Below are positions 21,048 to 42,308 of a DNA stretch of 64,000 nucleotides, one piece after another; within the stretch, counting starts at the first letter, position 1, and each line of letters begins with the position of its first letter. A model generated the notes under the pieces. It was not told the origin of the DNA. It made no database searches and was given only the letters and a program-made list of their open reading frames with translations. The stretch lies in the sequence record NC_019521.1; one strand, given 5' to 3'. The translations under genes and the position numbers were made by a program.

Positions 21048-21053
21048 TATAAT
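21025..21053 (+). promoter_or_regulatory. Early-type promoter TGAAAC-N17-TATAAT
   Basis: Exact consensus. Confidence 0.75.
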
Positions 21054-25465: not shown

Positions 25466-25469
25466 ATCT

Positions 25470-25511
25470 AAACCCATGTAACTGAAACTTACATGGGTTT
25501 CGTAGTATAAT
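25470..25511 (+). promoter_or_regulatory. Hairpin-embedded early promoter
   Basis: AAACCCATGTAA-cTGAAAC-TTACATGGGTTT-cgtag-TATAAT. Confidence 0.85.
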
Positions 25512-25529
25512 TTAAAAAATATTACAATA

Positions 25530-26063
25530 ATGAAATCATTATATAACATGTTTCTAGACGCAATATCAGAAACTAAACTATTCGAACAAGCATTTAAACG
25601 TAAAGATTTACTTAAGAAATTACAGAACGAATCTGATATGATAGTATTACATTTGATTAAAATAGCAATACTAAAACATACTCATTCTGATACTGTTGAT
25701 CATTGGAAACGTGAAATATCATCAGTGTTTTCTAATAAGCTCAAAGCTGATACTAAATCTGGTAATTTGAAACATAATGATTTTTACGAAAATCTATATG
25801 ATACACCACATACGGATTCTAAAGGATTAATATCTTTAATGACGTTAGGAATGTTCAGGAATTTAATTGAGGACGATTACGAAGAATCTGATTTGTTCTT
25901 GACTGATTCGTATATTAACGATACCAATTTTATCAAAAGATTATCAAAACATCTTGAAACGTTTTACAATGAAGCTTCAAATGTGATGATAGACAAATCA
26001 AAAAGATTATCTATAAGATCGTATATACTAGATTTACTTAATAATTTCGAATCAAATTTTTAA
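25530..26063 (+). CDS. DUF29-like helical protein
   Basis: IVLHLIKIA..HWKREI resembles the DUF29 HLLKW..W..I motif. Confidence 0.45.
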   Translation: MKSLYNMFLDAISETKLFEQAFKRKDLLKKLQNESDMIVLHLIKIAILKHTHSDTVDHWKREISSVFSNKLKADTKSGNLKHNDFYENLYDTPHTDSKGLISLMTLGMFRNLIEDDYEESDLFLTDSYINDTNFIKRLSKHLETFYNEASNVMIDKSKRLSIRSYILDLLNNFESNF

Positions 26064-26067
26064 TAAC

Positions 26068-26277
26068 ATGAACAATATTCAATTCCTAAAAATCAACAAA
26101 ATCGTAGGGGTAAACGTAAATCAGAAAGTATTGAAATCGACAATACAAGTTTCAGAAATATCAGAAATAACAGAAATTACTAATACTGGTTACAGTAGAG
26201 TAAGAATACTTAAAACTAATGGTGAAAGTTTTATGTGTGAAAATGATTTTGATGAGTTATTTATGAAATTACCATAA
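26068..26277 (+). CDS. Hypothetical protein
   Basis: 69-aa ORF. Confidence 0.65.
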   Translation: MNNIQFLKINKIVGVNVNQKVLKSTIQVSEISEITEITNTGYSRVRILKTNGESFMCENDFDELFMKLP

Positions 26278-26302
26278 TTTAATTAAAAATCGATAGTAAA
26301 AT

Positions 26303-26345
26303 AAACCCTTGGAAACTGAAACTTTCAAGGGTTTCGTAGTATAAT
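26303..26345 (+). promoter_or_regulatory. Hairpin-embedded early promoter
   Basis: AAACCCTTGGAA-acTGAAAC-TTTCAAGGGTTT-cgtag-TATAAT. Confidence 0.85.
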
Positions 26346-26386
26346 TACTTTATAACAAAATAAAGTAATTTGATTCTTTCAGAATC

Positions 26387-26395
26387 TATACATAC
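26387..26395 (+). promoter_or_regulatory. Late-type promoter variant TATACATAC
   Basis: One mismatch to the consensus, upstream of the topoisomerase gene. Confidence 0.45.
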
Positions 26396-26423
26396 AATAT
26401 AATCAAAACTATTCATTTCAAAT

Positions 26424-28346
26424 ATGGCAAAACTTTCTAATGAAGAAATCTTAGACAAATACAGAATGAAGGATGAGATAGAACATATCTTAACTCGTTC
26501 TGAAATGTTTGTCGGTTCTAAAGCTCCAGAAACTAAAGTAACAAACATTATCAATTCTGAAGATAAAGTTGAATCTCAAAAAATCACATACATTCCAGCG
26601 GTTTTAAAAGTTATCGATGAGGTATTATCTAACTCAGTTGATGAATATCGTCGTAATATAGCTGGAACTTCTAATTCAGGTGTTACTAAAATCGATATCG
26701 AAATTAGGAGAAATGGTCATATAACAATTCAAGATAATGGAGGTATTCCAACGGATATTCACCCATTAACAGGACAACCAATTCCAGCTTTCTTATTTTC
26801 GAATCTACGTACATCAACAAACTATGATGATACTAAATCAAGAAACGTAACTGGTACAAATGGTGTTGGTGCTGTGTTAACAAATATCTTTTCAAATCGT
26901 TTCACTGTAAAAACTTCATTAAATCCAAAAGGTCAAACATATATCAAGACTTGGGAAAACAACCTTTCAGTAACTAAGGATGATGTATTCGAGAAATCTA
27001 AAGGATTTAAAGGTTCGATATTTGATTTCGAAATCGATATGAGTCGTTTCTCTTTGGATGAAAATCAAGAAGAGATTATTAACGATGAAGTGTTATCATT
27101 ATTCAAACGTCGTTGTATTGATGCTGCGGGTGCTAATCCAGGTTTAACTATATCTTTGAAAATCGAAGATTATGAGAGAACTTGGAAATTCAATTCGTTC
27201 AAAGATTATATCAGTACTTTCAGTGGTATCGATGCTTCAAAATTGATTGGTGAGAAAAACGATCAATGGGAAATTTACTATTATCCAAATGCTGATAAGG
27301 AAGCTTACGAGATTGGATTCGTAAATGGTGCTGAATGTAATATCGGTAGACATTTCGAAGTTGGTGTTGTTGAAGCTGTTGAAGCTTTAGGAAGACTTCT
27401 TAAACGTAATAAACTTACATGTGATTACAGACAATTCGTAAATCATTGTCATGTATTCATTAACATGAATGTTCCAAATCCAGTATATTCGAATCAAACA
27501 AAAGAAAAACTTTCAACAAAGGCTGACAAACTTACAGAAAAAGGAAGACCAGCTTTATCTCAAGGATTAAAACGTTTATTATGTGAATCCGAAATAATTC
27601 AACTTTTATTAGATTGGCATGAACAATCTAAGAAAGCTGGAGAACGTAAGAAACTTAGAGATTTAGCTAACGAACAAGCTAAGAAAGTTAAGGTTGCGAA
27701 ATTGGTAGATGCTAACGCTAAAACTAATCGTAACGAATGTGAACTTTGGGTTTTTGAAGGTGAATCTGCATCATCTGGTTTTAGAAATGCTCGTAATCCT
27801 GAAACACAAGCTAAATACGATTTGAAAGGAAAAGTAATGAATACTTTCGGTATGTCAAGACTTCAAATCTTTCAAAGAAACGTTGAATATCGTGATATGG
27901 TAACAGCGATTAACTTACCAATCGATAATTCAAAAATCGATTTCGAATCTTTACGATATGGTAAAATCATCATAACAACTGATATGGACGTTGATGGTGA
28001 TTCAATTGCTGCTCAGCTTATAAGTTTCTATTATCATAATTATCGTGAGTTATTAGAAGCTGGAATGATTTACAGAGCTATCGCACCGATTATCTCAGCT
28101 GAGAAAGATGGTGAAGTTAAATTGTTTTATTCTGTTAAAGAATTCAATGATTCTGGATTACGTGGTTGGTCAGTGAGATATTTAAAAGGTACTGGTTCTA
28201 TGACTTCCGATGAATATACAGAAATGATTCAGAACTCACATTTACAACAATTGAAAATCGATGGAGAAACTGGAAGAGTTCTTGAGGACTGGTTCTCAAA
28301 TGATATTTCAAGACGTAAGAAATATTTCGAAGATGAGTTGGCATAA
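26424..28346 (+). CDS. Type IIA topoisomerase ATPase/TOPRIM subunit (T4 gp39+60 / GyrB-like)
   Basis: KVIDEVLSNSVDE, DNGGIP, GTNGVGA (GHKL); FEGESA, DMDVDG (TOPRIM). Confidence 0.95.
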   Translation: MAKLSNEEILDKYRMKDEIEHILTRSEMFVGSKAPETKVTNIINSEDKVESQKITYIPAVLKVIDEVLSNSVDEYRRNIAGTSNSGVTKIDIEIRRNGHITIQDNGGIPTDIHPLTGQPIPAFLFSNLRTSTNYDDTKSRNVTGTNGVGAVLTNIFSNRFTVKTSLNPKGQTYIKTWENNLSVTKDDVFEKSKGFKGSIFDFEIDMSRFSLDENQEEIINDEVLSLFKRRCIDAAGANPGLTISLKIEDYERTWKFNSFKDYISTFSGIDASKLIGEKNDQWEIYYYPNADKEAYEIGFVNGAECNIGRHFEVGVVEAVEALGRLLKRNKLTCDYRQFVNHCHVFINMNVPNPVYSNQTKEKLSTKADKLTEKGRPALSQGLKRLLCESEIIQLLLDWHEQSKKAGERKKLRDLANEQAKKVKVAKLVDANAKTNRNECELWVFEGESASSGFRNARNPETQAKYDLKGKVMNTFGMSRLQIFQRNVEYRDMVTAINLPIDNSKIDFESLRYGKIIITTDMDVDGDSIAAQLISFYYHNYRELLEAGMIYRAIAPIISAEKDGEVKLFYSVKEFNDSGLRGWSVRYLKGTGSMTSDEYTEMIQNSHLQQLKIDGETGRVLEDWFSNDISRRKKYFEDELA

Positions 28347-28360
28347 CTCATCTTCGTTTT
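28328..28360 (+). terminator. Terminator overlapping the topoisomerase stop codon
   Basis: CGAAGATGAGTT-ggcat-AACTCATCTTCG-TTTT. Confidence 0.85.
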
Positions 28361-28369
28361 AATACATAT
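28361..28369 (+). promoter_or_regulatory. Late-type promoter AATACATAT
   Basis: Variant directly after a terminator. Confidence 0.6.
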
Positions 28370-28393
28370 TTTATAAGCTATAAGACCAACAAA

Positions 28394-29653
28394 ATGCAAG
28401 ACAAAATTGAATTAGCTAAAGAACTATATAAATCTGGAAACGTAAAGGAGTTACAGGAATACTTGAGTATGTTGTTTACTGAAGAATCAGTTTCATATGT
28501 CGAATATGGAATGATTTATAATGTAAACGCTTCAAGTGAGGAAGAAGCTTCTAAATTACTAGAACTTGGTATTAAAGAATCGAGTGATTCTAATGCGATG
28601 GAAGCTTTTAACGTAACTTCAGTAATGGTTTTCAGTAAGACTAAGAAATATTCTATGGGTGTTTCTGGTGAAGTTTACAATTTCTTTCAAAACTCTGAAG
28701 GTGATTGGTTCATTGGCTATCCAAACGCTGAGGAACATGGTAAACAATTTGTCAAATATACATTTAACGATATCATATCGAAAGTAACGGAATTATCTAT
28801 CGATATTGATACCGACTTTAATTATCTTCAAACTTTCTTAAATAAACAAATCATTCCAGAATACGGTTCATTTGTATTTTTGAACGATTTCATATACGAA
28901 CAATTTAGTCCTACTAACGAACCTAAATCAAACAAGCCTCCAATGTATTACAAATTGGATGTTAATCGAAAAGGTTTAAGTTCTATGTTAGAAGAAATCA
29001 ATGTCAAGTTTCCAGAATATGTAAATGATGACGATGATTTCTGTAAATTGTTATTGTCACTTCCTTCTTCTCAGGGTTTTTATCGAATCCATTGTATTTC
29101 ATTCGATTATAATGGAATAGCTTACATGATTCATAAAGCTATCGACAAACCAAATCTTTATCATTTCGCTTACGGTTCTATAACAGAACTAAAGACTATT
29201 CCTGAAATCATACAGTATCTTAAAACTGCTAAAGAAATCAATCTTGGTTATCTAATGTTCGATGACTTGTATGAAACTATCGTTGAAGAAAATCCTGAAC
29301 TAGTTGAATCTTATTTCAAAGCTATCGCTGAATATGAAGACAAATTTGATAAACCTTGGGATAGGGTTAAAGGATCATTTGAATCAAATATTCAAATCGA
29401 TGTTGAGAAATCAAGATACACTAAATTAGCTTTACTTTCTGAATATTCGACAATCATGGAAAATGTAGCAAATCCAAATTACATCAGATTGCTATATTGT
29501 GAACTTACGAATGTTAAATGTTTCTTCGATGCTAACTTGAACATTTACATATCGATCAATGGTTCTAACGAAATCGGGAAATTTGAGAACATTACAGAAT
29601 TTGAGAAAGCTCTAGAACGAATTTACTTGAATACCAAAAACTTTATGAAATGA
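28394..29653 (+). CDS. Hypothetical acidic late protein
   Basis: 419-aa ORF. Confidence 0.75.
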   Translation: MQDKIELAKELYKSGNVKELQEYLSMLFTEESVSYVEYGMIYNVNASSEEEASKLLELGIKESSDSNAMEAFNVTSVMVFSKTKKYSMGVSGEVYNFFQNSEGDWFIGYPNAEEHGKQFVKYTFNDIISKVTELSIDIDTDFNYLQTFLNKQIIPEYGSFVFLNDFIYEQFSPTNEPKSNKPPMYYKLDVNRKGLSSMLEEINVKFPEYVNDDDDFCKLLLSLPSSQGFYRIHCISFDYNGIAYMIHKAIDKPNLYHFAYGSITELKTIPEIIQYLKTAKEINLGYLMFDDLYETIVEENPELVESYFKAIAEYEDKFDKPWDRVKGSFESNIQIDVEKSRYTKLALLSEYSTIMENVANPNYIRLLYCELTNVKCFFDANLNIYISINGSNEIGKFENITEFEKALERIYLNTKNFMK

Positions 29654-29979
29654 AACATATAACTAATTTTGAACTTAACGAAAGTTTGGCTGACATCAAA
29701 CAAAAAGAACATACCAAACTTTCTAAAAAGGTATTACCGATAGTCAATACAATGATTAACTTAACTGTTTTATGTATTGCTATTTTCATGCTTGTCACAT
29801 TTACGATTGAATCTTTATCACATGTCGAATCTAGATCGATATTCGATAAGATTGCATACGTTATTCTAAGATTCTTACGAAGTGCTGTTTTGATAGGTTC
29901 GTTATATCTATCGATAAAGGTCGTTTTCACATTCTTCAAATATCTATATAAAAAGCTATCAGGTGGTACTGAAGTATAG
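29650..29979 (+). CDS. 2-TM membrane protein with capsid-targeting-like N-terminus
   Basis: MKHITNFELNES followed by two hydrophobic helices; ATGA coupling. Confidence 0.65.
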   Translation: MKHITNFELNESLADIKQKEHTKLSKKVLPIVNTMINLTVLCIAIFMLVTFTIESLSHVESRSIFDKIAYVILRFLRSAVLIGSLYLSIKVVFTFFKYLYKKLSGGTEV

Positions 29980-30007
29980 ATTTTGATTCATTCCGTTACA
30001 TTACATG

Positions 30008-30056
30008 AACCCAAATTTCTTAGATGATATTTTATATTTCTTTGGAATTTGGGTTT
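30008..30056 (+). terminator. Hairpin/terminator
   Basis: AACCCAAATTTC...GGAATTTGGGTT. Confidence 0.6.
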
Positions 30057-30061
30057 AGCTG

Positions 30062-30070
30062 TATACATAT
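30062..30070 (+). promoter_or_regulatory. Late-type promoter TATACATAT
   Basis: Exact motif. Confidence 0.7.
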
Positions 30071-30101
30071 CATGTATTAAAAATTAAAAGATAGTAACGA
30101 A

Positions 30102-30911
30102 ATGGGTAAACTTGCAAAGCACTTAACAATCAATTCAAATTCAACAGAAAATTATCCGAAAATCATTCATTTCGTTTTTAACAATCATACTGAAAAATAC
30201 TACGAAGGTATTGTTTCAGAGATCGTAAAACTTAATTGTGAAGCTGGTAAAACTGTTATCGAATATTCTTCAGAGAATATCGACGAACATGGAAACATTG
30301 ACAATAGACCAGTAAGTAATGCGACTATCGTAAATCTTGTAAACTATTTTCCAGAATCTTATGATTACGATCATGAGGAAGTCTTATCGAAATATTATCA
30401 TTCGACTATAGTTCAAGAACTTATCGAATACTGTAACTTATCGAATTTGATTTTACTTAACGTAAATATCGATAACTGTTTTATGACAGCCCTTAATGAT
30501 ATTCATCAAAAGGATAAAATCGAAATCTTTCTAGAATCGAAAATAGAAAGAACACTTTTATTGAAGAATTCTAATACCGTTTGTAACGTATTCTGTTCTT
30601 ATATTTACGATAAGAAGACATTATCAGGTATTATATCAGATAACGACATTTACTTGAACAATAGATATCTAATCTTTCCAATAACGTTAAGAGAGTTTTC
30701 TACAGATTTATTGAACTTCTTATATCATAGTTGTTTTGATATCGTTAGACAAACTTACATATACGGTGAAGAACTTGAGACTATGTTCACATTCGTTAAG
30801 AACAATGTCGTAAATCCTGACAAAGTTCATGAGATACTAGATTTCATGTCAGATTCTAATGTTTACAATTATCATAACGAGCATATCGACACACTCATAT
30901 TCTACAAGTAA
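30102..30911 (+). CDS. Hypothetical protein
   Basis: 269-aa ORF. Confidence 0.75.
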   Translation: MGKLAKHLTINSNSTENYPKIIHFVFNNHTEKYYEGIVSEIVKLNCEAGKTVIEYSSENIDEHGNIDNRPVSNATIVNLVNYFPESYDYDHEEVLSKYYHSTIVQELIEYCNLSNLILLNVNIDNCFMTALNDIHQKDKIEIFLESKIERTLLLKNSNTVCNVFCSYIYDKKTLSGIISDNDIYLNNRYLIFPITLREFSTDLLNFLYHSCFDIVRQTYIYGEELETMFTFVKNNVVNPDKVHEILDFMSDSNVYNYHNEHIDTLIFYK

Positions 30912-30921
30912 AAAATAGATT

Positions 30922-30970
30922 GAAAGTTTCAGTTACGTAACTGAAACTTTCTTTCATTTCGTAGTACTAT
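30922..30970 (+). promoter_or_regulatory. Early promoter whose -35 lies in a perfect 30-bp palindrome
   Basis: GAAAGTTTCAGTTAC/GTAACTGAAACTTTC; TGAAAC-N17-TACTAT. Confidence 0.85.
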
Positions 30971-30999
30971 TCATATAATTAATAAAATTCATTTCAAAT

Positions 31000-32490
31000 A
31001 TGGCAAAACGTAGAAACGTTAAATCTTTATCAGAAATACCTAATGCTGAAAATCCTGCTAGAAAAATCAGGATAGATTCGTTAGATGTTACTGATTACAT
31101 GCAAACAAAATATCTAACATACGCAAAATATGCAGTAGCGAAACGTGCTGTTCCGTCATTAATCGATGGATTCAAAACTGGAGCTAGGAAAATATTACAT
31201 GCTGCTTTAAATGGTTCAGCTAAGAAAGGTTCTGATGTAAAATGTTTGAACTTAGTTGGTGACGTTTATTCATTATCGGGATATGATCATGGTGATTCTT
31301 CATTGTATTCGACAATGTTAACGTTATCATCAGATTTCTCGGATAACTTAGCACCATTATTTATCAAAGGTCAAGGTGGTACTTTACGTGATCCTGACGC
31401 TGCTGCAGCACCAAGGTATCTTTATATTCGTTTATCGAAATATACAAATCTGTTATACAAAACAGATTACGATATTTTGAAATTCGATGTTTCTGAGGGT
31501 GAAACTCATGAACCTCAATTCTATCTTCCAATCATTCCAACAGTTTTAACATCAAATACTTCTGGTATCGGTGTTGGTTATGCTTTCTCTTCAATGTCTT
31601 ATAATCCATTGGATTTGATTGAAGCGATAAGAAACTATTTAGCATATGGTTACATTACTTCGGTAAGACCATACGTTAAAGGTTTAACAGAAAACGCAAG
31701 ATGGTTCTTTACTGATGATAGATGGCATTGTCAAGGTCATTATGAAATCGTTAGAGCTACAAAACGTGGTGAGAAAAATAAGATAGTTGTAAACGAATTA
31801 ACTTTCGATAAAACTTTCTTAAATATCGAATCACATTATGATACGTTAGTTGATTCAGGAATAATCGAAGACTGGGTAAACAATTCAAGAGGTTCGAAAA
31901 TCAAATACGAATTATACTTTAAGACTGACGAACAATTCGAAAAAGCTATTTCAGATGTTTGGAATCTTGAGTTGAATATTCTTAAGAACATTTCGAAAGT
32001 TGAAAAGGATAATCTTACTGTTATGGACGAAAACGATAAGATTAGATATTTCGAAAAACCTGAAGCGTTGATCGAATACTTTACTAAGTTCAGACTTGGT
32101 AAATATAACGATCGTAAAGATGCTATGACTAAGAAAATCAATGAAAGAATCGAAAGAATCAATATGCTTCTTAAATTCATTCAGTTAGTTATAGATTCGA
32201 AAATCGTTCTTTCAAATCGTTCAATCAAAGACGTTAAAGCTGATTTGGATAAACATAAGATTTTACATGATGTATTGTCAATGCCAATATCCAGAATTAC
32301 TAAGGAGGAATTCGAAAAACTTAAGAAAGAATCTAAAGAATTGGATGCTGAACTTAAACGTTTATTGAATACTTCAATCGAAGAAATGTATCTTAACGAT
32401 TTAGACGAATTGGAAAAATCGATTCAAGAGGATTTCTTAGACCAAGACGAATTACCGTTAGAAATTGAAGAAGTTGAAGAGTCTGAATAA
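31000..32490 (+). CDS. Type IIA topoisomerase breakage-reunion subunit (T4 gp52 / GyrA-like)
   Basis: RAVPSLIDGFKTGARKIL, YDHGDSSL, AAAPRY catalytic Tyr, GIGVG. Confidence 0.95.
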   Translation: MAKRRNVKSLSEIPNAENPARKIRIDSLDVTDYMQTKYLTYAKYAVAKRAVPSLIDGFKTGARKILHAALNGSAKKGSDVKCLNLVGDVYSLSGYDHGDSSLYSTMLTLSSDFSDNLAPLFIKGQGGTLRDPDAAAAPRYLYIRLSKYTNLLYKTDYDILKFDVSEGETHEPQFYLPIIPTVLTSNTSGIGVGYAFSSMSYNPLDLIEAIRNYLAYGYITSVRPYVKGLTENARWFFTDDRWHCQGHYEIVRATKRGEKNKIVVNELTFDKTFLNIESHYDTLVDSGIIEDWVNNSRGSKIKYELYFKTDEQFEKAISDVWNLELNILKNISKVEKDNLTVMDENDKIRYFEKPEALIEYFTKFRLGKYNDRKDAMTKKINERIERINMLLKFIQLVIDSKIVLSNRSIKDVKADLDKHKILHDVLSMPISRITKEEFEKLKKESKELDAELKRLLNTSIEEMYLNDLDELEKSIQEDFLDQDELPLEIEEVEESE

Positions 32491-32514
32491 GACTCTTCAT
32501 TAATTTTGTCACAT

Positions 32515-32697
32515 ATGAAAATTAAGAAAAAGTACATAGGATGGATAGGATTCATCCGTTTCGAGAAAGTTGAGATTTCCTGGAATTTCAGGAATATCGC
32601 TTTACCATTGTCCTTCGATTTTACAGGACCGTTAGCGTTTGTTCAAATACTATTCATAACGTTCATTTTCCCAATGAGCAAAGACTATCATCTGTAA
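32515..32697 (+). CDS. Hypothetical small hydrophobic protein
   Basis: ATG at 32515 preferred over TTG at 32506. Confidence 0.6.
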   Translation: MKIKKKYIGWIGFIRFEKVEISWNFRNIALPLSFDFTGPLAFVQILFITFIFPMSKDYHL

Positions 32698-33098
32698 TGG
32701 AATTCAATATAAAGAAATTAAGTGATTTCGTTTTTGTTATTGACTGTACTGTCAGATTCAAGCCTTTTAATAAACTAACGATATTCAAAAGAACATTCAG
32801 AATGTATAAAGAATGTTCACAATACGTTTCTACAGCATTAGACGAAGGTCATTACGAGAAAGTTCCAAACAAATTAGTTACTTTCGAAAGTTTAGAAGAG
32901 GCTGGAAATTTCATAACTTTACTTAAAGAAGATATCGTTACCAAGAAACGTATGGATGAATACGACGATTTAAGTAAAAATGCTGTGTCATATAATAGAC
33001 ATATATCAGCTTTCCAGAATTTCACTATTCATGTAAAGAATTTGAATTTCGAGGAAGATAAGTTCGTTAGTAAATCAAGTAGAATCAAAATAAACTAA
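32697..33098 (+). CDS. Hypothetical protein, paralog 1 of 3
   Basis: Shares the F..F.IFK and L.F.x(L/Y)E.A..(F/Y) pattern with the next two ORFs. Confidence 0.7.
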   Translation: MEFNIKKLSDFVFVIDCTVRFKPFNKLTIFKRTFRMYKECSQYVSTALDEGHYEKVPNKLVTFESLEEAGNFITLLKEDIVTKKRMDEYDDLSKNAVSYNRHISAFQNFTIHVKNLNFEEDKFVSKSSRIKIN

Positions 33099-33099
33099 T

Positions 33100-33345
33100 A
33101 TGTCGTTAGCAAAAGTAGTTTCGTACAAACCAAAAAGATATAAACTAAATGACAGTTTCAATATCGTTAGAACTGTAAGGATCATGATATTTCATAGATT
33201 TACGATTTTCAAAATTTCTAAGATTATGTCTGAAGAAGTTGAATCTAATGTGTTCGTTAATGGTACTGACAAAGTCAAAAGAGAATTAGTTTTCAATGAT
33301 TATGAATCAGCTAAAAGATATTCTGAGAAATTAGCAAAAATCTAG
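33100..33345 (+). CDS. Hypothetical protein, paralog 2 of 3
   Basis: IFHRFTIFK...LVFNDYESAKRY. Confidence 0.7.
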   Translation: MSLAKVVSYKPKRYKLNDSFNIVRTVRIMIFHRFTIFKISKIMSEEVESNVFVNGTDKVKRELVFNDYESAKRYSEKLAKI

Positions 33346-33350
33346 ATCAA

Positions 33351-33680
33351 ATGATTAAGAAACAAATAACTTACGAAATTAAACAACATGGTAAGAACTT
33401 CTATAAAGTTAGATGTATCAAGTCTTTCAAGTTCTTTGGTAGTATTTTTCTTAAACTAAAGAATTATCTTTATACTGACGTAGATAGAAACGATCCCGAA
33501 TTTACTATTATCGATCGTAAGATTATCTTGTTCAATACTTATGTAGATGCTGAAAGATACATTTCTAAACTTCGTATAAAAACTGAAACTTCCGAATTCG
33601 AAAAAGAGAAATCTAAACTTGAAAGAGATTACGTTGTTTACGAACCAGCAACTGAAACTTTTCGAAGTCCTAAAGTATAA
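33351..33680 (+). CDS. Hypothetical protein, paralog 3 of 3
   Basis: FKFFGSIFLK...ILFNTYVDAERYI. Confidence 0.7.
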   Translation: MIKKQITYEIKQHGKNFYKVRCIKSFKFFGSIFLKLKNYLYTDVDRNDPEFTIIDRKIILFNTYVDAERYISKLRIKTETSEFEKEKSKLERDYVVYEPATETFRSPKV

Positions 33681-33681
33681 T
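33653..33681 (+). promoter_or_regulatory. Early-type promoter TGAAAC-N17-TATAAT
   Basis: Exact consensus within the upstream CDS end. Confidence 0.75.
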
Positions 33682-33700
33682 ATATTCAAATTTATCAACT

Positions 33701-33883
33701 ATGATTACAGTAAAAACTGAATTAGAATCCTATCCATTACATGCTGGATATACGTCAATTAAGGATGAAGCTCAATCAATTCTTAACAAGCGTATTCAAA
33801 AGAAAGCTTTGAAAGAAGCTAAAATCAAGAAAATTCGATCTGAAAGAAAACGTAAACGAATCCATTCTAAACGTAATCGATAA
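33701..33883 (+). CDS. Small K/R-rich protein ending KRNR
   Basis: 60 aa with a basic tail. Confidence 0.7.
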   Translation: MITVKTELESYPLHAGYTSIKDEAQSILNKRIQKKALKEAKIKKIRSERKRKRIHSKRNR

Positions 33884-34023
33884 TGGTAGCAAATCCATTC
33901 CTATCTGACATGATTCCTAAAGACTTTAAGAAAGCTCAACAGGAATTAAAAGCCAAAAAGAAAGCTGTAAAAGCTCGTAAGCTTAGAAAGAAACGTAATA
34001 ATCATAAGAAACGTAATCGATAA
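33883..34023 (+). CDS. Small K/R-rich protein ending KRNR (not in ORF track)
   Basis: MVANPFLSDMIPKDFKKAQQELKAKKKAVKARKLRKKRNNHKKRNR; TAATG coupling at both ends. Confidence 0.75.
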   Translation: MVANPFLSDMIPKDFKKAQQELKAKKKAVKARKLRKKRNNHKKRNR

Positions 34024-34457
34024 TGAAAATAGATTTAGAAACATTCAAAGAACGTTTAAAGAAATCATTAGATCGTTATGACCGTCACATATCTTTAGAT
34101 TCTATAAAACTTAGATGTGAACGTGAGATTCTCATCGATAGATTATTCAATAAGCTTCTATTCAGTGAAGATAAAGAAGCTTACAGATATTTCAAAATCG
34201 TATCTAACGGTAAAGCACTTTATGGATATGTAATGAAATCAGCCCTTGGACATGATGGTATAATAAGATACAATTCTGGTGTCCGATACTATCTAGGACA
34301 CGATAACTATAAATTGAAGGTTACGTATCTTGATCCAGTTGAACAGACTATAAAATATGAAACGTTTTCATTAGATTCTATAACTAGTATCGAAGTTTGT
34401 AAGAAACATGATTTCGATACATTAGTTGGAATGTTTTCAACTTTCGGATATGAATAA
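34023..34457 (+). CDS. Hypothetical protein
   Basis: 144 aa, TAATG coupling. Confidence 0.75.
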   Translation: MKIDLETFKERLKKSLDRYDRHISLDSIKLRCEREILIDRLFNKLLFSEDKEAYRYFKIVSNGKALYGYVMKSALGHDGIIRYNSGVRYYLGHDNYKLKVTYLDPVEQTIKYETFSLDSITSIEVCKKHDFDTLVGMFSTFGYE

Positions 34458-34815
34458 ATCAAGATATACTAACGAAATCGAATATATCTTATGTGCTGCT
34501 ATTTGGTACAAAGATGAAACGAAAGTCAAATTGAACGATAAAGAACAATTACGTTTAAGAGGTTTCCAACCTTACAATATCGATAAGGGATTTGTCGTTA
34601 CTGGTTGGAGACATGGAAACGTAATATCAATATTTAACGCTTTGACAGGATTACGTTCGGTTACATTTGGTAAGGATTCATGTGGTGAACATACTCAAGG
34701 ATTTCTAACTTCATGTAATAGATTCGTGGATCGTAAAGAAGGTGGTGAAATTGCATTTGCTGCTAATCAAACTAAAGAATTAAAAACATATTTATTTTCA
34801 GAAGATTTATACTGA
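34450..34815 (+). CDS. Conserved-looking phage hypothetical protein
   Basis: YILCAAIWY..GWRH..QGFLTSCNRFVDRKE; start moved to MNKSRY. Confidence 0.75.
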   Translation: MNKSRYTNEIEYILCAAIWYKDETKVKLNDKEQLRLRGFQPYNIDKGFVVTGWRHGNVISIFNALTGLRSVTFGKDSCGEHTQGFLTSCNRFVDRKEGGEIAFAANQTKELKTYLFSEDLY

Positions 34816-34816
34816 T

Positions 34817-35041
34817 ATGAAATACTTCAAGGACTGGAACAAGGAAACTAAAGAATTCGAAAAGTTTGAGAAAGAATTTGATCAGTCATTAGTCAGAAAA
34901 GAAAAAGAAGTTAAGACTAAAACAGATGATTCCATTTCTTCAGACGATTACGAAATGAATACATTTAGTAGAAACGAAAGAATCGAGGAAGATTCATTCG
35001 ATGGGATGTTTTCAGGTAAATATTCAAAAGACAATTGCTAA
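34817..35041 (+). CDS. Hypothetical small acidic protein
   Basis: 74-aa ORF. Confidence 0.65.
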   Translation: MKYFKDWNKETKEFEKFEKEFDQSLVRKEKEVKTKTDDSISSDDYEMNTFSRNERIEEDSFDGMFSGKYSKDNC

Positions 35042-35042
35042 T

Positions 35043-35396
35043 ATGGATAAACTTATAACTTTCGAAAGAGATACTGACAATCGTTGGTATGCTGTTTTAC
35101 CTGAATGGGAAGGTGAACGTGAAGAACTTGAAATGGTTCAAGGTGCTGACATAATGCTTGATATTTTGTCAATGAACTTTAATGATAATCATGACAGAAT
35201 TCAATTAGTTCTATCTACTGAATTACCTACTGGTAAATATGACAGATTCTTAACACTTAATTCTATACCTGATAACTCTTCATGTGGTATGAATTACATG
35301 TGTATTGGTGTCGAACTTAAATTTCCAGTTTGGTTATGTGATGTAACTACTTTCGTATTTGGAAAATTCCCTGAAACTATTTACGTGCTATACTAA
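35043..35396 (+). CDS. Conserved-looking hypothetical protein
   Basis: RWYAVLPEWEG..LEMVQGADIMLD..VWLCDVTTFVFGKFPE; start moved to MDKLIT. Confidence 0.75.
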   Translation: MDKLITFERDTDNRWYAVLPEWEGEREELEMVQGADIMLDILSMNFNDNHDRIQLVLSTELPTGKYDRFLTLNSIPDNSSCGMNYMCIGVELKFPVWLCDVTTFVFGKFPETIYVLY

Positions 35397-35758
35397 TGAC
35401 TAGAAAAGAAATGATACAGTTCGCTGTAGAAGCAATGAAAAACAGACTAGCTGAATCTATCGTTTCAGTTAGTGAAAGATATCCAGAAGGTTTATTTCGT
35501 TTCAAATATAAAGGCTGGGTAGTTAATGATATATTCGATATACTAAGAATCGAATGGTTAGACAAATCATCTAAGCTTAAACTAGATAACGATGATTTGA
35601 CTTTACTGATTACGAAGCATCCTGATTTCTATGATGATACATTTGTTTCTTTAGGGCATGAACCTGACTCTATCGAATCTCAAAAATACATAGCTTATGA
35701 AAGATTAAGAGGTTGGACGAGAGGATACGAAAAACTTCTTGAAAATTTCGAATATTAA
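35396..35758 (+). CDS. Hypothetical protein
   Basis: 120 aa, TAATG coupling. Confidence 0.7.
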   Translation: MTRKEMIQFAVEAMKNRLAESIVSVSERYPEGLFRFKYKGWVVNDIFDILRIEWLDKSSKLKLDNDDLTLLITKHPDFYDDTFVSLGHEPDSIESQKYIAYERLRGWTRGYEKLLENFEY

Positions 35759-35764
35759 AAGTAA

Positions 35765-35810
35765 ACGAAACCCTCGGAAACTGAAACTTTCGAGGGTTTC
35801 GTAGTATAAT
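35765..35810 (+). promoter_or_regulatory. Hairpin-embedded early promoter
   Basis: ACGAAACCCTCGGAA-acTGAAAC-TTTCGAGGGTTTCGT-ag-TATAAT. Confidence 0.85.
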
Positions 35811-35838
35811 TATTACATTATACAAAATACTTTCAATT

Positions 35839-36066
35839 ATGGTACAATTTTCACAAGATGAGTTATTACTCCTATCATCATTAGGATTCGTATTAAAGGA
35901 TGGATTCTATACATTAGAAATGGAATTCGATTACGTTTCGATTCTTAAATATGCTGAAAACGAATTTAAACTAGAATGGTATGATTACGATTCTTATGGG
36001 CTCCAACATAAAGAATATTCGAAGAAAGATGAACAACTTTCAGAATTCGTATCAAGAACTATCTAA
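35839..36066 (+). CDS. Small acidic early protein
   Basis: 75 aa, D/E- and aromatic-rich. Confidence 0.7.
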   Translation: MVQFSQDELLLLSSLGFVLKDGFYTLEMEFDYVSILKYAENEFKLEWYDYDSYGLQHKEYSKKDEQLSEFVSRTI

Positions 36067-36077
36067 TCAAAAACGTC

Positions 36078-36410
36078 ATGCAAGACCCAATAAAAGAAAC
36101 AGTCAAAAAGATTTTCGATATCGTTATTAAAGCTTTAGATAATCTACAAGAATCTGAAGTTAACGATACTTTCATTTTGAAACATGGAAACTTCATCGTT
36201 AATGATGTAGCTGATATCGTTAATATCGAATCTACGTTAGGTAACATTTCTTCAGAAGAATTCGATCTATTCGAAATCATTTACGAACAATTAAATAGTG
36301 ATACATTCTTTAGAAACGATACAGACTCAAACAATGTACGTAGACTAATTTCCGGATTACGAAGAGCTGAATACAAACGTTCATATAACATATTTCTTAA
36401 AGACATTTAA
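36078..36410 (+). CDS. Hypothetical protein
   Basis: 110-aa ORF. Confidence 0.7.
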   Translation: MQDPIKETVKKIFDIVIKALDNLQESEVNDTFILKHGNFIVNDVADIVNIESTLGNISSEEFDLFEIIYEQLNSDTFFRNDTDSNNVRRLISGLRRAEYKRSYNIFLKDI

Positions 36411-36419
36411 TCAAACATT

Positions 36420-37094
36420 ATGACAAGCACTGTTGAACCTGTTATGTTCTATGAACATAAGGACGAACTAATCAAAACTTACGAAACTATAGCTACGATT
36501 TTAATCAGTGAAGATGTAAGTGTTTTAAGAATCGAAAAGAGTCAAGAAGGAACTAGGGTTCTATTTTTCAATAAAAAAGTAGAAAATGTTCTAGACCTTC
36601 TTAGCGTTCTTAAATTCAATAGAGTTCTAGATAACAAGAGTAACATGGAAATGGAGAAATTCATGGATTTAGTATTCTTTCTGAAATCTTTAGAATTCAA
36701 AACTTCTTTGAATTGTACTGAAGCGTTAATCAAGAAACGTCTTGAAGAAATTTCAAGATATTTGAATTCGGTAGTATTCGATTTAACGAAATTACCAGAA
36801 CCTCCATTAACTTTAGAAACTATTAAAACTGGTGATACGTTCTACTATCTAAACGATAATCTTAATATCGTAAGATATGAATTTCGTGAAGAATATCCTA
36901 TGAAGTCTAAGTCTATGCAACGAAAATACTTCATAGTTATCGACAGATGTAACGAAAGACCTATTAGAGTTCATTTCAAAGTTTTGGAAAAGATGTTAGA
37001 AGCTAATATCAGAACTTTGAAAGAAGCTAAGATCGTTAAGTTGGAAAAATACAAAGAATTCGTTAAAACGTTAGAAGAAAATATCAATGAATAG
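36420..37094 (+). CDS. Hypothetical protein
   Basis: 224-aa ORF. Confidence 0.75.
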   Translation: MTSTVEPVMFYEHKDELIKTYETIATILISEDVSVLRIEKSQEGTRVLFFNKKVENVLDLLSVLKFNRVLDNKSNMEMEKFMDLVFFLKSLEFKTSLNCTEALIKKRLEEISRYLNSVVFDLTKLPEPPLTLETIKTGDTFYYLNDNLNIVRYEFREEYPMKSKSMQRKYFIVIDRCNERPIRVHFKVLEKMLEANIRTLKEAKIVKLEKYKEFVKTLEENINE

Positions 37095-37674
37095 TAAGAC
37101 AATATTAGTTGCTGGAAACATTGGAAATATGTCATGTTCTTCAGCATTGAATAAAATTCAATCGGGTGAAAAGGTATCAGTTTCATCAGACAAAGGTACT
37201 TTAGGTAACGAATGTAATCGTTCAGTTTGTGAAAACAAACCAGCTTTGTATTTCAATAAATCTACTAAGAAGCATTACTGTAAGCAATGTTCTAGTATGA
37301 TTAACGATGCTACTCGTGGTGATGCATATCGTTTGTATGGTTCTGAATTATGTCAGTTAGACGAATCTCTTACTGAAGAAGAGATCAGAATGTATGAGAA
37401 GCTTTTGGACATTGCAATTCCTCAAATACCTGAATCAGACTTAATGGATGATGCAGCTTTAGATTACAAAGATACTTACATGAAATTCAAAGAAAGTGAT
37501 ATCTTCAGTAAAGGAAGCATGGAAGATTATCTTTACGGTAAACTTACACGTAAGGAAATGGAATATGTTGGTAAAGCTATTCCAGTAACCAGTTCGATTA
37601 CTATAGGTAGAAATGACCCATGTCCATGTAAATCTGGAAAGAAATTCAAACAGTGTTGTATTAATAAACGATAA
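37087..37674 (+). CDS. SEC-C motif protein with an N-terminal Cys-rich zinc finger
   Basis: C-terminal GRNDPCPCKSGKKFKQCC; N-terminal CNRSVC...YCKQC. Confidence 0.85.
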   Translation: MNSKTILVAGNIGNMSCSSALNKIQSGEKVSVSSDKGTLGNECNRSVCENKPALYFNKSTKKHYCKQCSSMINDATRGDAYRLYGSELCQLDESLTEEEIRMYEKLLDIAIPQIPESDLMDDAALDYKDTYMKFKESDIFSKGSMEDYLYGKLTRKEMEYVGKAIPVTSSITIGRNDPCPCKSGKKFKQCCINKR

Positions 37675-37678
37675 CGAA

Positions 37679-38287
37679 ATGATAGAAAACATAGGAACGT
37701 TATATGTAATAACGAATAAACATGATGGTGGAAAATTCAAATCGATGTTTAACTTAATAGCATGTAATAAAGAAGTACCTTCTAAACATTCTATAGGGAC
37801 AGAAGATGAAATTAGTTTATTCTGGTTCGAAAAATTGATTACGAAAATAAACATAATCGACGATCAGAAAGATAAAGCTGTAGACAGTGCTAAACGTAAG
37901 ATTCGTGAAGTTTACAGGATTTTCAAAGAAATGGATTTCGATTTAGAAATGTATCTTAACTATAACGATTGTAAGTTAATAATCGAACCGGTTGACAAAG
38001 ACGTTTTCGCTATTACTGAACTAACTGAATCATTAGTTTCAGAAATTAGAACTATCGATAATCTTCAGGAAGTCGCTGAAGTCTTAGAAAAATCCATTAA
38101 GAATGGATGCAAATATGTTTCATTGAATGGTACATTCTTTACTAGTGATGAGAATTTAGCTTCTTATGTAACCTATTACGAATTTCCAGAAGAATATGAC
38201 AAGTCTTCGCTTTTGGAAGAAAGCAAGTTTCTTTCTAAAGTTCAAGCTTATAACATTTATACAGTAACTATAACAATACAACCATAA
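37679..38287 (+). CDS. Hypothetical protein
   Basis: Start moved to MIENIG to remove the overlap with the SEC-C gene. Confidence 0.7.
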   Translation: MIENIGTLYVITNKHDGGKFKSMFNLIACNKEVPSKHSIGTEDEISLFWFEKLITKINIIDDQKDKAVDSAKRKIREVYRIFKEMDFDLEMYLNYNDCKLIIEPVDKDVFAITELTESLVSEIRTIDNLQEVAEVLEKSIKNGCKYVSLNGTFFTSDENLASYVTYYEFPEEYDKSSLLEESKFLSKVQAYNIYTVTITIQP

Positions 38288-38289
38288 TT

Positions 38290-38517
38290 ATGAGTAAAAT
38301 GTCATCCCTTGCTGGATTAGCAATGTTATCAGCTTTAGGAGCTATGGAAAAATATGGAAAGGAATATTACGGAGAACCTGAAAGGGAATCTAAAGAACCA
38401 AAGGAAATAGTCAAACCTATTCCTAATGGTTGTAAAGAATACGTAATCGAAGGTAAAACTATCATAGCTATTTCTGAGAAATCTGCTATGAAAAAATTCA
38501 AAAGAAAATATGGGTAG
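38290..38517 (+). CDS. Hypothetical small protein
   Basis: 75 aa, hydrophobic N-terminus, basic C-terminus. Confidence 0.7.
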   Translation: MSKMSSLAGLAMLSALGAMEKYGKEYYGEPERESKEPKEIVKPIPNGCKEYVIEGKTIIAISEKSAMKKFKRKYG

Positions 38518-38935
38518 TTATTACGGACAGGAATATAATGTGTCACCTGAAGGTTTGTTACCTAGAATGTTAGATGCTAAGTATTTTCAGATTTCTGACA
38601 ATCTTCATATCTTTGCTACACCGAATCTAGCAAAACCTTCGTTATATCGTAAAGGTTCAATTTGTCCAACAACATGGGTTAACATAGGACCAGAACTTGA
38701 TGTTGGTTATAGATATACTGATAAACGTTTTACAGTAACATACTATCGTGGTTCTTTAGATAAGATAGATTTTCATTTCGGTTCTAATCTTTCTAAAATC
38801 GTTAAAAGACAAATCAGAGAGTATTTCGAACGTATTCATATTTCGAATCTGTCACAAGTTTCTTATACTTTCGATATCTTTGTTTATTGTGAATCCGAAA
38901 CATTCGAAAAATTTATGAAAGAATTGTCTGAGTAA
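38510..38935 (+). CDS. Hypothetical protein
   Basis: 141-aa ORF. Confidence 0.7.
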   Translation: MGSYYGQEYNVSPEGLLPRMLDAKYFQISDNLHIFATPNLAKPSLYRKGSICPTTWVNIGPELDVGYRYTDKRFTVTYYRGSLDKIDFHFGSNLSKIVKRQIREYFERIHISNLSQVSYTFDIFVYCESETFEKFMKELSE

Positions 38936-38936
38936 C

Positions 38937-38965
38937 TGAAACTTTTGACATAATCGTAGTACTAT
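38937..38965 (+). promoter_or_regulatory. Early-type promoter TGAAAC-N17-TACTAT
   Basis: Matches the class. Confidence 0.75.
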
Positions 38966-38998
38966 ACATTTAATTAATAATCTGTAAACTATACAATC

Positions 38999-39352
38999 AT
39001 GAAACAAGTAGATTTAAACAAGGAAATTCAACTTCAGTATTTAGCTATCGAAAACGGTAGTCTAGTTCTTAAAGATAATTTAGTTATACCGTTAAAACAT
39101 TTGACTTCGTTAACATCACATGCTATAGTAAAGCATACAACTAAAGGTGTGATACAGCGTACTCAAAATCCTTTAGCGAATTCGTTAGTTAGAATAGCTA
39201 CTTTTAGTTTAATGGATGAAGAATTCATATGTAAGTTTAACGAATTCGATAAGATTCCAATGTTACCTACTGAAATCGTATTACTTGATAGAAGTACTAA
39301 AGATTATCCTGTTTCAAAAATGATAGATTTTTTGAAAGAAACTGTAAAATAA
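38999..39352 (+). CDS. Hypothetical protein
   Basis: 117-aa ORF. Confidence 0.7.
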   Translation: MKQVDLNKEIQLQYLAIENGSLVLKDNLVIPLKHLTSLTSHAIVKHTTKGVIQRTQNPLANSLVRIATFSLMDEEFICKFNEFDKIPMLPTEIVLLDRSTKDYPVSKMIDFLKETVK

Positions 39353-39371
39353 TTGAAAAATAAAGTAAAAT

Positions 39372-39414
39372 AAAGCCTCAGAAACTGAAACTTCTGAGGC
39401 TTTTGTAGTATAAT
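39372..39414 (+). promoter_or_regulatory. Hairpin-embedded early promoter
   Basis: AAAGCCTCAGAA-acTGAAAC-TTCTGAGGCTTT-tgtag-TATAAT. Confidence 0.85.
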
Positions 39415-39452
39415 ATACTAAATAAAACATAAATAACTTATATCTTTCAATT

Positions 39453-40745: not shown

Positions 40746-42224
40746 ATGGCAATTCAATTAACACGAGTATCACAATATTCAGCTTTAGAAGTAGGAGAAA
40801 CATTTGGATCAGATTTAAACGATATCGATCTATACGTTTACGACTTTAACAATAGTACAGGTAAACAAGTTCTAGGTGCTGACAATAGTAACAATTCAAG
40901 AAACTATTCAACGTCACCATATCTGCAAAACGTTTTCTTAAAAACTACACCCAGACCTTATATTCCTGACACTTATCATGATTCTAGAGAAATAAGTACT
41001 TTACTTCCTGGAAATTTACCAATGGTACAGTTTCAGAAGCTTAGATTACATATGTCAGCAGGTTGGACATATCCTTCTAATATTCATGGAATGTGGTTTA
41101 GAATTTATGTCAAGATAAACGAAATCGATGTTACTTTAGCTTCGATAGTTGATGAATATTTCGACACAAGATTAGAAACTAATTCGAGAGAATATGTTTT
41201 GGAAAATCAAGTGTTTACTCAACATATTGAAGTAGATGTTCTTGACATTAACTTTCTGTTCTCTCAGAAGACACAAGCTTTTCAGGATATAATTAATATT
41301 TTCACTAACGGTCAGCAAGTGTCATATGTATCAGATTTAATGATAGAATTCGGTTTTATTGATAATGATGATATGGTTACGTTTGTTGAAAATGGATTCC
41401 CATTCGAACGATTCTCAAGTTTAACTGACTATCGTAATCAAATCATACAAAGGTCTACTGAAGATTCTCAACTGTTTTCGTTAATATCTTTACAGAAAGA
41501 AAATCCAAATTATCTAGATTTCAAATTAGCTCATAGCACTACAACACTTCAAGCTTATTTCGAGAAGTTCAAAGAGATAAATGAAGAAATCGATATATTT
41601 CATCAGGTTACATTTTCATTCTATGATTCTAATGATGTACTGTTATCAACTGATTCGATAGAACTTAGAAACTTTTCTGATCAATACGCTTCAGTTAGTT
41701 ACATTCCTCATGAATACTATACATCGGATCATATACTTGTACGATGCGTTTCTAGAGCTGTTAATTCAGGTTCTGGTCAAACATGGATTCGAGTTTCAGA
41801 GTTAGCGGTTTTAACAGCTGATTTGAAACCATCGAATGAAGTATTTCAATTTGATAATCTTATCGTTAAGAACGAAATAACAAAGATCGAACATAAACTT
41901 GAGAATTCACCATTACTTCCAGAAGTTGTTGAAATTTACAAACCAGTATACTATGTTCTAGTTTCTAAAGAACAACCAGAAATTTCGATCTCACCATTTG
42001 ATTCAGCATTCGCTTTCGATATCGATATCGAAGTTGTAGCTTCTAAAAAGTTATCTTTACGAATAGGTGAACGTGTATATGAAGAAACTTCAAGGACGTC
42101 TAATTCTGTCATATTTAATATCAAAGCTTTAGAATACTATCGAAAGGAAAAGGAATACTATATCGTAGACGGAAATCTACAGGAAGTATTTCGAGGAAAG
42201 GTTACAAGATACGGAGAACAATAA
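40746..42224 (+). CDS. Putative virion structural protein
   Basis: 492 aa, stand-alone late promoter and terminator. Confidence 0.55.
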   Translation: MAIQLTRVSQYSALEVGETFGSDLNDIDLYVYDFNNSTGKQVLGADNSNNSRNYSTSPYLQNVFLKTTPRPYIPDTYHDSREISTLLPGNLPMVQFQKLRLHMSAGWTYPSNIHGMWFRIYVKINEIDVTLASIVDEYFDTRLETNSREYVLENQVFTQHIEVDVLDINFLFSQKTQAFQDIINIFTNGQQVSYVSDLMIEFGFIDNDDMVTFVENGFPFERFSSLTDYRNQIIQRSTEDSQLFSLISLQKENPNYLDFKLAHSTTTLQAYFEKFKEINEEIDIFHQVTFSFYDSNDVLLSTDSIELRNFSDQYASVSYIPHEYYTSDHILVRCVSRAVNSGSGQTWIRVSELAVLTADLKPSNEVFQFDNLIVKNEITKIEHKLENSPLLPEVVEIYKPVYYVLVSKEQPEISISPFDSAFAFDIDIEVVASKKLSLRIGERVYEETSRTSNSVIFNIKALEYYRKEKEYYIVDGNLQEVFRGKVTRYGEQ

Positions 42225-42237
42225 GTTCTCCGTTTTT
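42211..42237 (+). terminator. Terminator overlapping the stop codon
   Basis: ACGGAGAAC-aataa-GTTCTCCGT-TTTT. Confidence 0.8.
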
Positions 42238-42308
42238 GTTTAGTATAATATCAATACTAATAATACATATTCTATAATGATAAACTAGTTACTTTTCGTA
42301 ACATTCAG

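Follow-up and report, generated by a model that had tools for sequence, protein, structure and literature searches.

Why should the −35 box of a predicted promoter form the loop of a long inverted repeat? The question is raised by four sites in the genome of "Sphingomonas" phage PAU (NC_019521.1/JQ362498.1; 219,372 bp; 31.3% G+C; genes almost all on the + strand). They lie within a stretch of 64,000 nucleotides, hereafter the window, which comprises bases 1-64000 of the record; record and window coordinates are the same (megablast of positions 25000-40000, 100% identity). An earlier note, made from the letters of the window, had reported the four sites and offered three readings of them: promoters gated by cruciform extrusion and sensitive to supercoiling, hairpins recognised on entering DNA by a packaged factor with phage N4 as the precedent, or compact fusions of a terminator with a promoter. 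Here, the remainder of the PAU genome was added to the window and motifs were counted genome-wide; unless the window is named, the counts given below refer to the whole genome. The patterns in the sequence lead us to favour, with a probability of about 0.7, the last of the three readings: the repeated PAU cassette, 45-90 bp long, would be a terminator-promoter fusion in which two signals of the coding strand overlap.

All four sites were found as described, with arms of 12-15 bp, a loop that reads CTGAAAC or ACTGAAAC and a spacing of exactly 17 bp between TGAAAC and TATAAT, and the stems listed for them are correct, with the addition of one G·T pair each at 26303 and 35765 that had gone unmentioned (Table 1). 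Folded as RNA, the four hairpins have free energies (dG) of −14.4 to −23.7 kcal/mol (z −4.1 to −6.8 relative to shuffles). The cassette motif is not a product of chance: CTGAAAC-N12-20-TATAAT occurs six times in the window, always on the + strand, against 0.06 occurrences expected from shuffles. The family of four is thus real, but its size was understated, as 16 hairpins with (A)CTGAAAC as the loop are present in the 219-kb genome, every one of them intergenic and on the coding strand. This number is made up of 11 of the 17 exact CTGAAAC-N17-TATAAT sites, all 17 of which are on the + strand, and of five further copies with a variant −10 box, namely TAGTACTAT at 90572, 146740 and 203391, TAGTAATAT at 159943 and the more divergent TTAGTAAGAT at 175172.

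That the stems covary around a fixed loop was borne out. Among the eight copies with an 8-nt loop (seven distinct rows), all 12 pairs are kept paired in every sequence, and in five of the 12 both partners have changed; the observed values were not attained by any of 500 shuffles or by any slid register. The type A copies, which have a 7-nt loop, were judged by folding and stand outside this formal count of pairs, because their left arm is displaced by one column when the alignment is ungapped. We conclude that pairing of the stems around the fixed loop is maintained by selection.

The two conserved blocks do read as a −35 and a −10 box. With the octamer AGTATAAT as the sole criterion, 38 sites were picked on the + strand and 12 on the − strand. 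At a distance of 17 bp upstream, 22 of the 38 + strand sites have the exact hexamer TGAAAC and eight more have a hexamer that differs from it by one mismatch; of the remaining eight, four are intragenic. The resulting consensus is AAcTGAAACtt-N15-AGTATAAT, with 17 bp from TGAAAC to TATAAT and with TACTAT and TAATAT as variants of the −10 box; its −35 box, TGAAAC, differs from TTGACA and from the promoters of the Bacteroidetes host (see also below). Sites of this class lie 20-90 nt 5′ of annotated start codons, and the genes downstream include those for topoisomerase II subunits, two helicases, the single-stranded DNA-binding protein (SSB), ligase, NrdH, MazG and the sigma factor, along with many small genes of unknown function. 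We infer that transcription is initiated at this motif.

Promoters of this class also exist without the hairpin. A meaningful upstream fold is lacking (dG −0.9 to −6.3 kcal/mol) in at least nine that have the exact consensus; in several of them (11492, 21024, 33652 and 48883) the −35 box lies within the upstream coding sequence, and when all 17 exact copies are aligned, those without a hairpin (six) share only the blocks AACTGAAAC(tt) and AGTATAAT. The fixed register of the loop had been taken to call for more than termination combined with a promoter. It does not, as the box in the loop is the −35 box and keeps the same 17-bp spacing in the hairpin-less promoters. Nor is the register universal: the box lies in the 3′ arm of the hairpin at 30922 and at 166061, and at 121074, 140313 and 197207 it is partly in an arm and partly in a 4-nt loop; at 218554 the loop TGAAAC is carried by an unrelated stem of 15 bp. 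What is roughly constant across these register variants is the distance between the end of the stem and the −10 box, 27 hairpins (dG ≤ −12 kcal/mol, at least nine pairs) ending 2-13 nt before it, with a median of 4 nt.

A second motif, TTATACATA, is likewise strand-specific (36 occurrences on the + strand against one on the − strand, mostly intergenic) and fronts virion genes, including those for the sheath, the portal, the protease and the major capsid protein. It is probably a late promoter, and it resembles the late promoter of T4, TATAAATA. At 12 of the 31 TTATACATA sites that have no −10 box of the TATAAT class within 45 nt upstream, a strong hairpin is found 3-17 nt before the motif, with loops (GAAA, TAAC and AATT, for example) of 4 nt in the median, against 7 nt before promoters of the TATAAT class. 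A hairpin directly before the promoter is therefore a general layout in PAU, and the large, fixed loop occurs only where a −35 box needs room.

Mismatches in the stems bear on whether it is the RNA or the DNA that folds. With a stem finder open to any isolated mismatch and favouring no type, 22 G·T and only 3 A·C were counted. Ten of the 16 copies contain a G·T pair, equivalent to an A·C mismatch on the opposite strand; in the alignment of the copies with an 8-nt loop, a G·U is found at pair 12-25 in five of the seven rows. The wobble-bearing copies are more stable by 2.6-3.7 kcal/mol as + strand RNA than as − strand RNA. Since G·U is tolerated in + strand RNA but becomes A·C on the other strand or in a cruciform, the predominance of G·T argues for + strand RNA over a DNA cruciform, and it favours selection of the stem at the RNA level, on the sense strand. 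Moreover, the hairpin lies 5′ of the predicted start of the cassette's own transcript; it would therefore be present only in transcripts coming from the upstream gene, as an element of their 3′ end.

If the cassette is a terminator-promoter fusion, one of its two signals would be a phage promoter for the downstream gene, formed by the −35 element AAcTGAAACtt and the extended −10 element AGTATAAT, and the other an RNA hairpin that would end the upstream transcript and that consists of an A-tract, a stem that is G+C-rich at its base and the tail UUU(C/U)GUAG. The hairpin, which has 4-7 G·C pairs, is predicted to terminate transcription, as an intrinsic terminator or attenuator and possibly also as a stabiliser of the 3′ end, and transcript 3′ ends would fall in the UUUCGUAG tails of the cassettes. 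Its end would have to be immediately 5′ of the −10 box, in the part of the promoter spacer that is T-rich already, and with an arm of about 12 bp this position would bring the −35 box to the apex; the stem is closed by two pairs between the AA and the TT beside the box. The loop would then be invariant because it is a −35 box, an element recognised by a protein, and the arms would covary because only their pairing matters. Among the readings offered by the earlier note, that of a fusion fits best with a hairpin that is separable, with a register that varies and with a bias towards G·T on the + strand.

Several observations weigh against this interpretation. The U-tract is weak, the tail having 4 T in the 8 nt past the G+C-rich part of the stem, and a scan for consensus terminators (at least 5 T in 8) called none of the four sites of the window on the + strand and two on the − strand. 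A single position, repeated within one family, accounts for about half of the G·T count. The asymmetry between the strands in folding energy is modest, and under DNA parameters the strands are equivalent. Finally, the covariation partly reflects a few stem types that were copied later, and all of the evidence comes from paralogous copies in one genome.

A candidate for the protein that reads the promoters is encoded at the start of the window. gp1 belongs to the sigma-70 family (Table 1); it has two labels in RefSeq, RNA polymerase sigma factor and 'internal capsid vertex protein (mango) subunit 2', and unexplained inner structures are present beneath the vertices of empty PAU capsids (PMC5646251). 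Upstream of gp1, across the ends of the record, are a TGAAAC-N17-TATAAT promoter (219285-219313) and a TATACATA motif at 219331. Promoters of the host type in Bacteroidetes have a −7 box with the sequence TAnnTTTG (PMC9723704); in PAU, TTG-N17-21-TAnnTTTG occurs 7 times on the + strand and 20 times on the − strand, with no intergenic case among the + strand sites examined. PAU thus appears not to rely on the consensus of the host sigma-A. Because regions 2 and 4 suit a bipartite −35/−10 promoter, it is plausible that gp1, and not the host sigma-A, reads the TGAAAC/TATAAT promoters, and does so as ordinary duplex DNA. gp1 may also be packaged in the capsid, an idea that comes from a single annotation note. 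Going one step further, gp1 could be injected with the DNA, the host core polymerase then starting on duplex TGAAAC-N17-TATAAT promoters that the Bacteroidetes sigma-A is unable to read; taken as a whole, this scenario is rather unlikely.

Two of the rival explanations place the hairpin in the DNA. In the first, extrusion of the duplex inverted repeat as a cruciform would hide or present the −35 box and so switch the promoter according to supercoiling. The repeat is indeed long (12-15 bp) and centred on the −35 box, and as single-stranded DNA both strands fold well (−8 to −14 kcal/mol, z −3.8 to −6.8). However, it is imperfect in the copies that carry the G·T/A·C mismatch, the centres of 7-8 nt found in all copies make extrusion costly, and a mismatch bias of 22 to 3 is not expected from selection on the DNA; besides, promoters of the same consensus do without any repeat, and hairpins also precede the promoter class that has no −35 box, all of which makes cruciform gating very improbable. 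Much the same evidence weakens the proposal that a polymerase or factor delivered by the virion, as in N4, reads an extruded hairpin on entering DNA. A packaged transcription factor is conceivable in view of the double annotation of gp1 and of the inner structures under the capsid vertices (PMC5646251), and host-type promoters are nearly missing from the coding strand. Against this, gp1, having regions 2 and 4, is an ordinary member of the sigma-70 family, and proteins of this type read duplex −35 and −10 boxes; hairpin-less promoters with the same boxes are common. The hairpins of N4 have a stem of 5-7 bp and a loop of 3 nt, and the stems and loops of PAU are far above that size. Nor was an RNA polymerase domain found in the eight largest PAU proteins, the ones compared with Pfam, a library that divergent polymerases can escape. 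We would be surprised if such a mechanism operated here, and equally so if only the hairpin-bearing promoters formed a structure-gated subset, extruded on injected, torsionally stressed DNA, with the −35 loop presented to, or hidden from, packaged gp1. The inverted repeat might also be an operator for a dimeric DNA-binding regulator overlapping the promoter, and symmetric arms around a −35 box are a common position for one; an operator would conserve sequence rather than complementarity, and the compensatory changes in the arms at five positions led us to reject this explanation, to which we attach almost no credence.

Other alternatives accept a hairpin in the RNA or address how the cassettes came to be so similar. 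The hairpin could protect or process the 3′ end of the upstream transcript or bind a protein, instead of acting as a terminator. This would agree with a + strand structure at the RNA level and with the weak U-tract, and an invariant loop could also suit an RNA-binding protein; yet the −35 box already accounts for the invariance of the loop and is just as constant at promoters without a stem, and other PAU hairpins at the same relative position are ordinary tetraloops with T-rich tails. We consider such a role improbable. Mobility or gene conversion of the cassettes, in the manner of the promoter-early stem-loop (PeSL) elements described below (PMC2839356), would account for their near-identity and would make them substrates for recombination that shuffles small genes, a role additional to those of terminator and promoter. 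Similarity between copies extends over 30-55 nt, and over 78-88 nt in four pairs, several scattered copies being identical over 39-49 nt; and cassettes in pairs flank one or two small open reading frames whose products are mutually unrelated (gp39-40 between 25470 and 26303, gp114 between 90572 and 91477, gp200 between 146740 and 147409, and gp247 and gp248 between the cassettes at 175172, 175936 and 176716). The spread of cassettes by duplication together with a gene was rejected, as no paralogy was detected among 40 downstream proteins at E<=1e-3. The identity of the copies could instead result from strong selection on a short, densely functional sequence, and no close relative of PAU was found that would show insertions or deletions at the cassette borders. 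Mobility is a possible, if doubtful, addition to the terminator-promoter fusion.

Table 1. Predicted promoters, hairpins and related features in the window (bases 1-64000 of the PAU genome)
Feature	Coordinates	Strand	Elements	Neighbouring genes
Cassette, stem type A	25470..25511	+	stem AAACCCATGTAA/TTACATGGGTTT 25470-25500; loop = −35 box CTGAAAC 25482-25488; −10 box TATAAT 25506-25511	between gp38 (end 25465) and gp39 (start 25530)
Cassette, stem type C	26303..26345	+	stem AAACCCTTGGAA/TTTCAAGGGTTT 26303-26334, one G·T; loop ACTGAAAC 26315-26322; −10 box 26340-26345; ~88 bp similarity to copy at genome position 91477	upstream of gp41, topoisomerase II subunit
Cassette, stem type B	35765..35810	+	15-bp stem ACGAAACCCTCGGAA/TTTCGAGGGTTTCGT 35765-35802, one G·T; loop ACTGAAAC 35780-35787; −10 box 35805-35810	between gp56 and gp57
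Cassette, stem type D	39372..39414	+	stem AAAGCCTCAGAA/TTCTGAGGCTTT 39372-39403; loop ACTGAAAC 39384-39391; −10 box 39409-39414	between gp64 and gp65
Hairpin-less promoter	21024..21053	+	CTGAAAC-N17-TATAAT; dG −2.6	overlaps gp30 3′ end, upstream of gp31
Hairpin-less promoter	33652..33681	+	CTGAAAC-N17-TATAAT; dG −4.4	overlaps gp49 3′ end, upstream of gp50
Hairpin-less promoter	38936..38965	+	CTGAAAC-N17-TACTAT (−10 variant)	begins directly 3′ of gp63 stop codon; upstream of gp64
Hairpin-less promoter	48883..48911	+	aTGAAAC-N17-TATAAT	−35 box inside gp73; upstream of gp74
Palindrome-borne promoter	30922..30970	+	perfect 13-bp arms GAAAGTTTCAGTT-ACGT-AACTGAAACTTTC 30922-30951; −35 box 30941-30947 in 3′ arm; T-rich tail; −10 box TACTAT 30965-30970	upstream of gp45
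Unrelated 11-bp hairpin	6117..6153	+	loop ACAAA; ends 4 nt before AGTATAAT; GTTACA at −35 position	between gp10 and gp11
Unrelated 10-bp hairpin	15173..15212	+	loop ATGTAA; −35 variant TGTAAC overlaps loop; then TTTAGTATAAT	spans gp21 stop codon; upstream of gp22
Hairpin like a classic terminator	42211..42249	+	ACGGAGAAC-AATAA-GTTCTCCGT; tail TTTTGTTT, then AGTATAAT; no TGAAAC box	between gp67 and gp68
Second motif TTATACATA	1994, 6100, 9746, 12308, 40721, 60855, 61653	+	29 more genome-wide	
gp1, sigma-70-family protein	94..1182	+	regions 2 and 4, aligning with RpoD/SigA regions 2 and 4; PHROG 351, E=9e-50	

Some further features of these regions deserve mention. The palindrome at 30922-30951 holds two inverted −35 motifs (GTTTCAGTT-ACGT-AACTGAAAC), which gives a −35 box on both strands, and it could serve as a bidirectional terminator. 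Two tandem copies of AGTATAAT, at 42244 and 42332 (region 42211-42340 of the window), lie in the 178-nt spacer before the gp68 helicase gene, both without TGAAAC and with a hairpin before the first copy only. In several cassettes an AT-rich palindrome starts immediately 3′ of the −10 box, as in TACTTTAT-N-ATAAAGTA and CATTTAATTAATTAAATG; such palindromes, which could be operators or hairpins of the 5′ leader, are found at 26346-26367 in the window, at 27520-27539 and 38759-38779 of genome segment L002 and at 28418-28438 of segment L003. Farther downstream, the start-codon context TTTCAA(T/C)TATG was counted 19 times on the + strand, with no case on the − strand (for example at 35828-35841 and 39442-39455 of the window). 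No Shine-Dalgarno sequence was seen at the PAU starts inspected, in agreement with a Bacteroidetes host (PMC6847099; PMC3738902). A comparison with Rfam gave no known RNA family over the cassette sites and, within the window, the tRNA cluster only. This cluster (1273-1903, 3′ of gp1) comprises seven tRNA genes, including three for tRNA-Met and a 143-nt tRNA-Ser gene annotated as two joined pieces, which suggests an intron. Elsewhere in the genome (segment L002, 13211-18784), gp103, of 1857 residues, has 16 DUF285 repeats (E=2e-271) and a weak match to the PKD domain, and is probably a surface or fibre protein.

The cassettes had been placed in a T4-like setting, which holds only in part. PAU is a jumbo myovirus with a capsid protein of the T4 gp23 type (PMC5646251) and is otherwise distant, unclassified and not T4-like in the narrow sense; its host, HER1398, was moved from Sphingomonas to Sphingobacterium, in the Bacteroidetes (PMC3738902). 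No close relative was found in phage records, in IMG/VR or in JGI metagenomes, PAU being the sole match at the DNA level in the phage collection, and gp41, the product of a gene adjoining a cassette, is likewise without a close relative in IMG/VR or the metagenomes. The nearest isolates, MA9V-1/-2 and PTm1/PTm5, are very distant, the sigma protein being only about 25% identical in the nearest isolated relatives. The cassette pattern had no match in JGI metagenomes and matched only PAU itself in IMG/VR, where a looser pattern gave, among the matches listed, single and chance-like matches in other contigs. The first 50 kb of Chryseobacterium phage MA9V-1 have no such cassette, only ordinary terminators with loops of 3-6 nt. 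Two of the terminator hairpins of that phage (3156-3195 and 39460-39499) are each followed by a common motif, TTTGAAAA(A)TAGTTGC, which may be a promoter class of its own.

Taken together, these data provide a first map of predicted promoters and terminators for an orphan jumbo phage of a Bacteroidetes host, with two strand-specific promoter classes, TGAAAC-N17-TATAAT at genes of DNA metabolism and small genes and TTATACATA at virion genes. Neither class resembles the TAnnTTTG promoters of the host; together with the capsid-internal label of gp1, this suggests that PAU may import its own sigma factor, and we regard a possible virion-borne sigma factor with its own set of promoters as a stronger lead than the architecture of the hairpins. 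If the promoters were after all gated by structure, they would represent an immediate-early switch without counterpart among sigma-70-type promoters.

How does the predicted PAU cassette compare with known systems? As in intrinsic terminators, a stem-loop with a G+C-rich base comes right after the stop codon, with an A-tract before it and a U-run after it, and its G·U pairs are strand-specific; the cassette differs from them in its large loop of 7-8 nt and in a short U-tract that is broken by the spacer and the extended −10 element. With the early promoters of N4 it has in common an inverted repeat at the promoter that can form a hairpin and, possibly, a transcription protein delivered by the virion; in N4, however, the hairpin is essential at every promoter of the class and is read by a giant T7-like polymerase, whereas in PAU it is optional, large and variable, and the candidate reader is a sigma-70-family factor. 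In this last respect PAU is closer to the jumbo and T4-related phages that encode sigma-70-family factors (Iyer et al., 2021, PMC7824862): as in these, no RNA polymerase of its own was detected (in PAU, among the eight largest proteins), and the sigma factor would redirect the host core enzyme, although in PAU the connection of gp1 with the TGAAAC-N17-TATAAT promoters is a matter of prediction.

The closest counterparts are the PeSL cassettes of the T4-like phages RB49/phi1, T4/PST and KVP40/nt-1 (Arbiol et al., 2010, PMC2839356; Comeau et al., 2014, PMC4122927). In these modules, which recur between genes, a strong sigma-70-like promoter is combined with a stem-loop that terminates upstream transcription, and reporter assays have shown both promoter and terminator activity; they fall into five subclasses according to where the stem-loop lies, which in some is over the −35 or the −10 box. 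The stems contain G-T pairs, and conservation extends over about 100 bp (PMC2839356, PMC4122927). PeSL cassettes also go along with insertions, deletions or replacements between closely related phages and with mini-circles; in PAU, the pairs of cassettes that flank single small open reading frames would be an indirect hint of the same. The statement that an architecture of this kind is undescribed in T4-like phages was thus mistaken. At the level of sequence, PAU has what characterises these elements: a repeated, bipartite putative promoter facing the downstream gene and a stable stem-loop near or over its boxes. In both systems the repeats are intergenic and co-oriented with the genes, a −35/N17/−10 promoter is joined to a stem-loop that acts, or in PAU would act, on upstream transcription, the stem-loop lies between the boxes or overlaps the −35 or −10 box, G-T pairs are present, the conserved span is of the order of 50-100 bp, and small genes of unknown function are often flanked. 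PAU differs in being a distant jumbo myovirus with a Bacteroidetes host, in a −35 box that is TGAAAC and not TTGACA or TTTAC, in the exact placement of this box within a 7-8-nt loop in the main family, in the unusual uniformity of that family and in the lack of a Shine-Dalgarno part. Thus, the terminator-promoter fusion as such is known; what is new is the phage lineage and host phylum, the TGAAAC promoter consensus and a sigma factor, gp1, annotated as internal to the capsid, and fused cassettes of the PeSL type would extend well beyond the classical T4-like phages.

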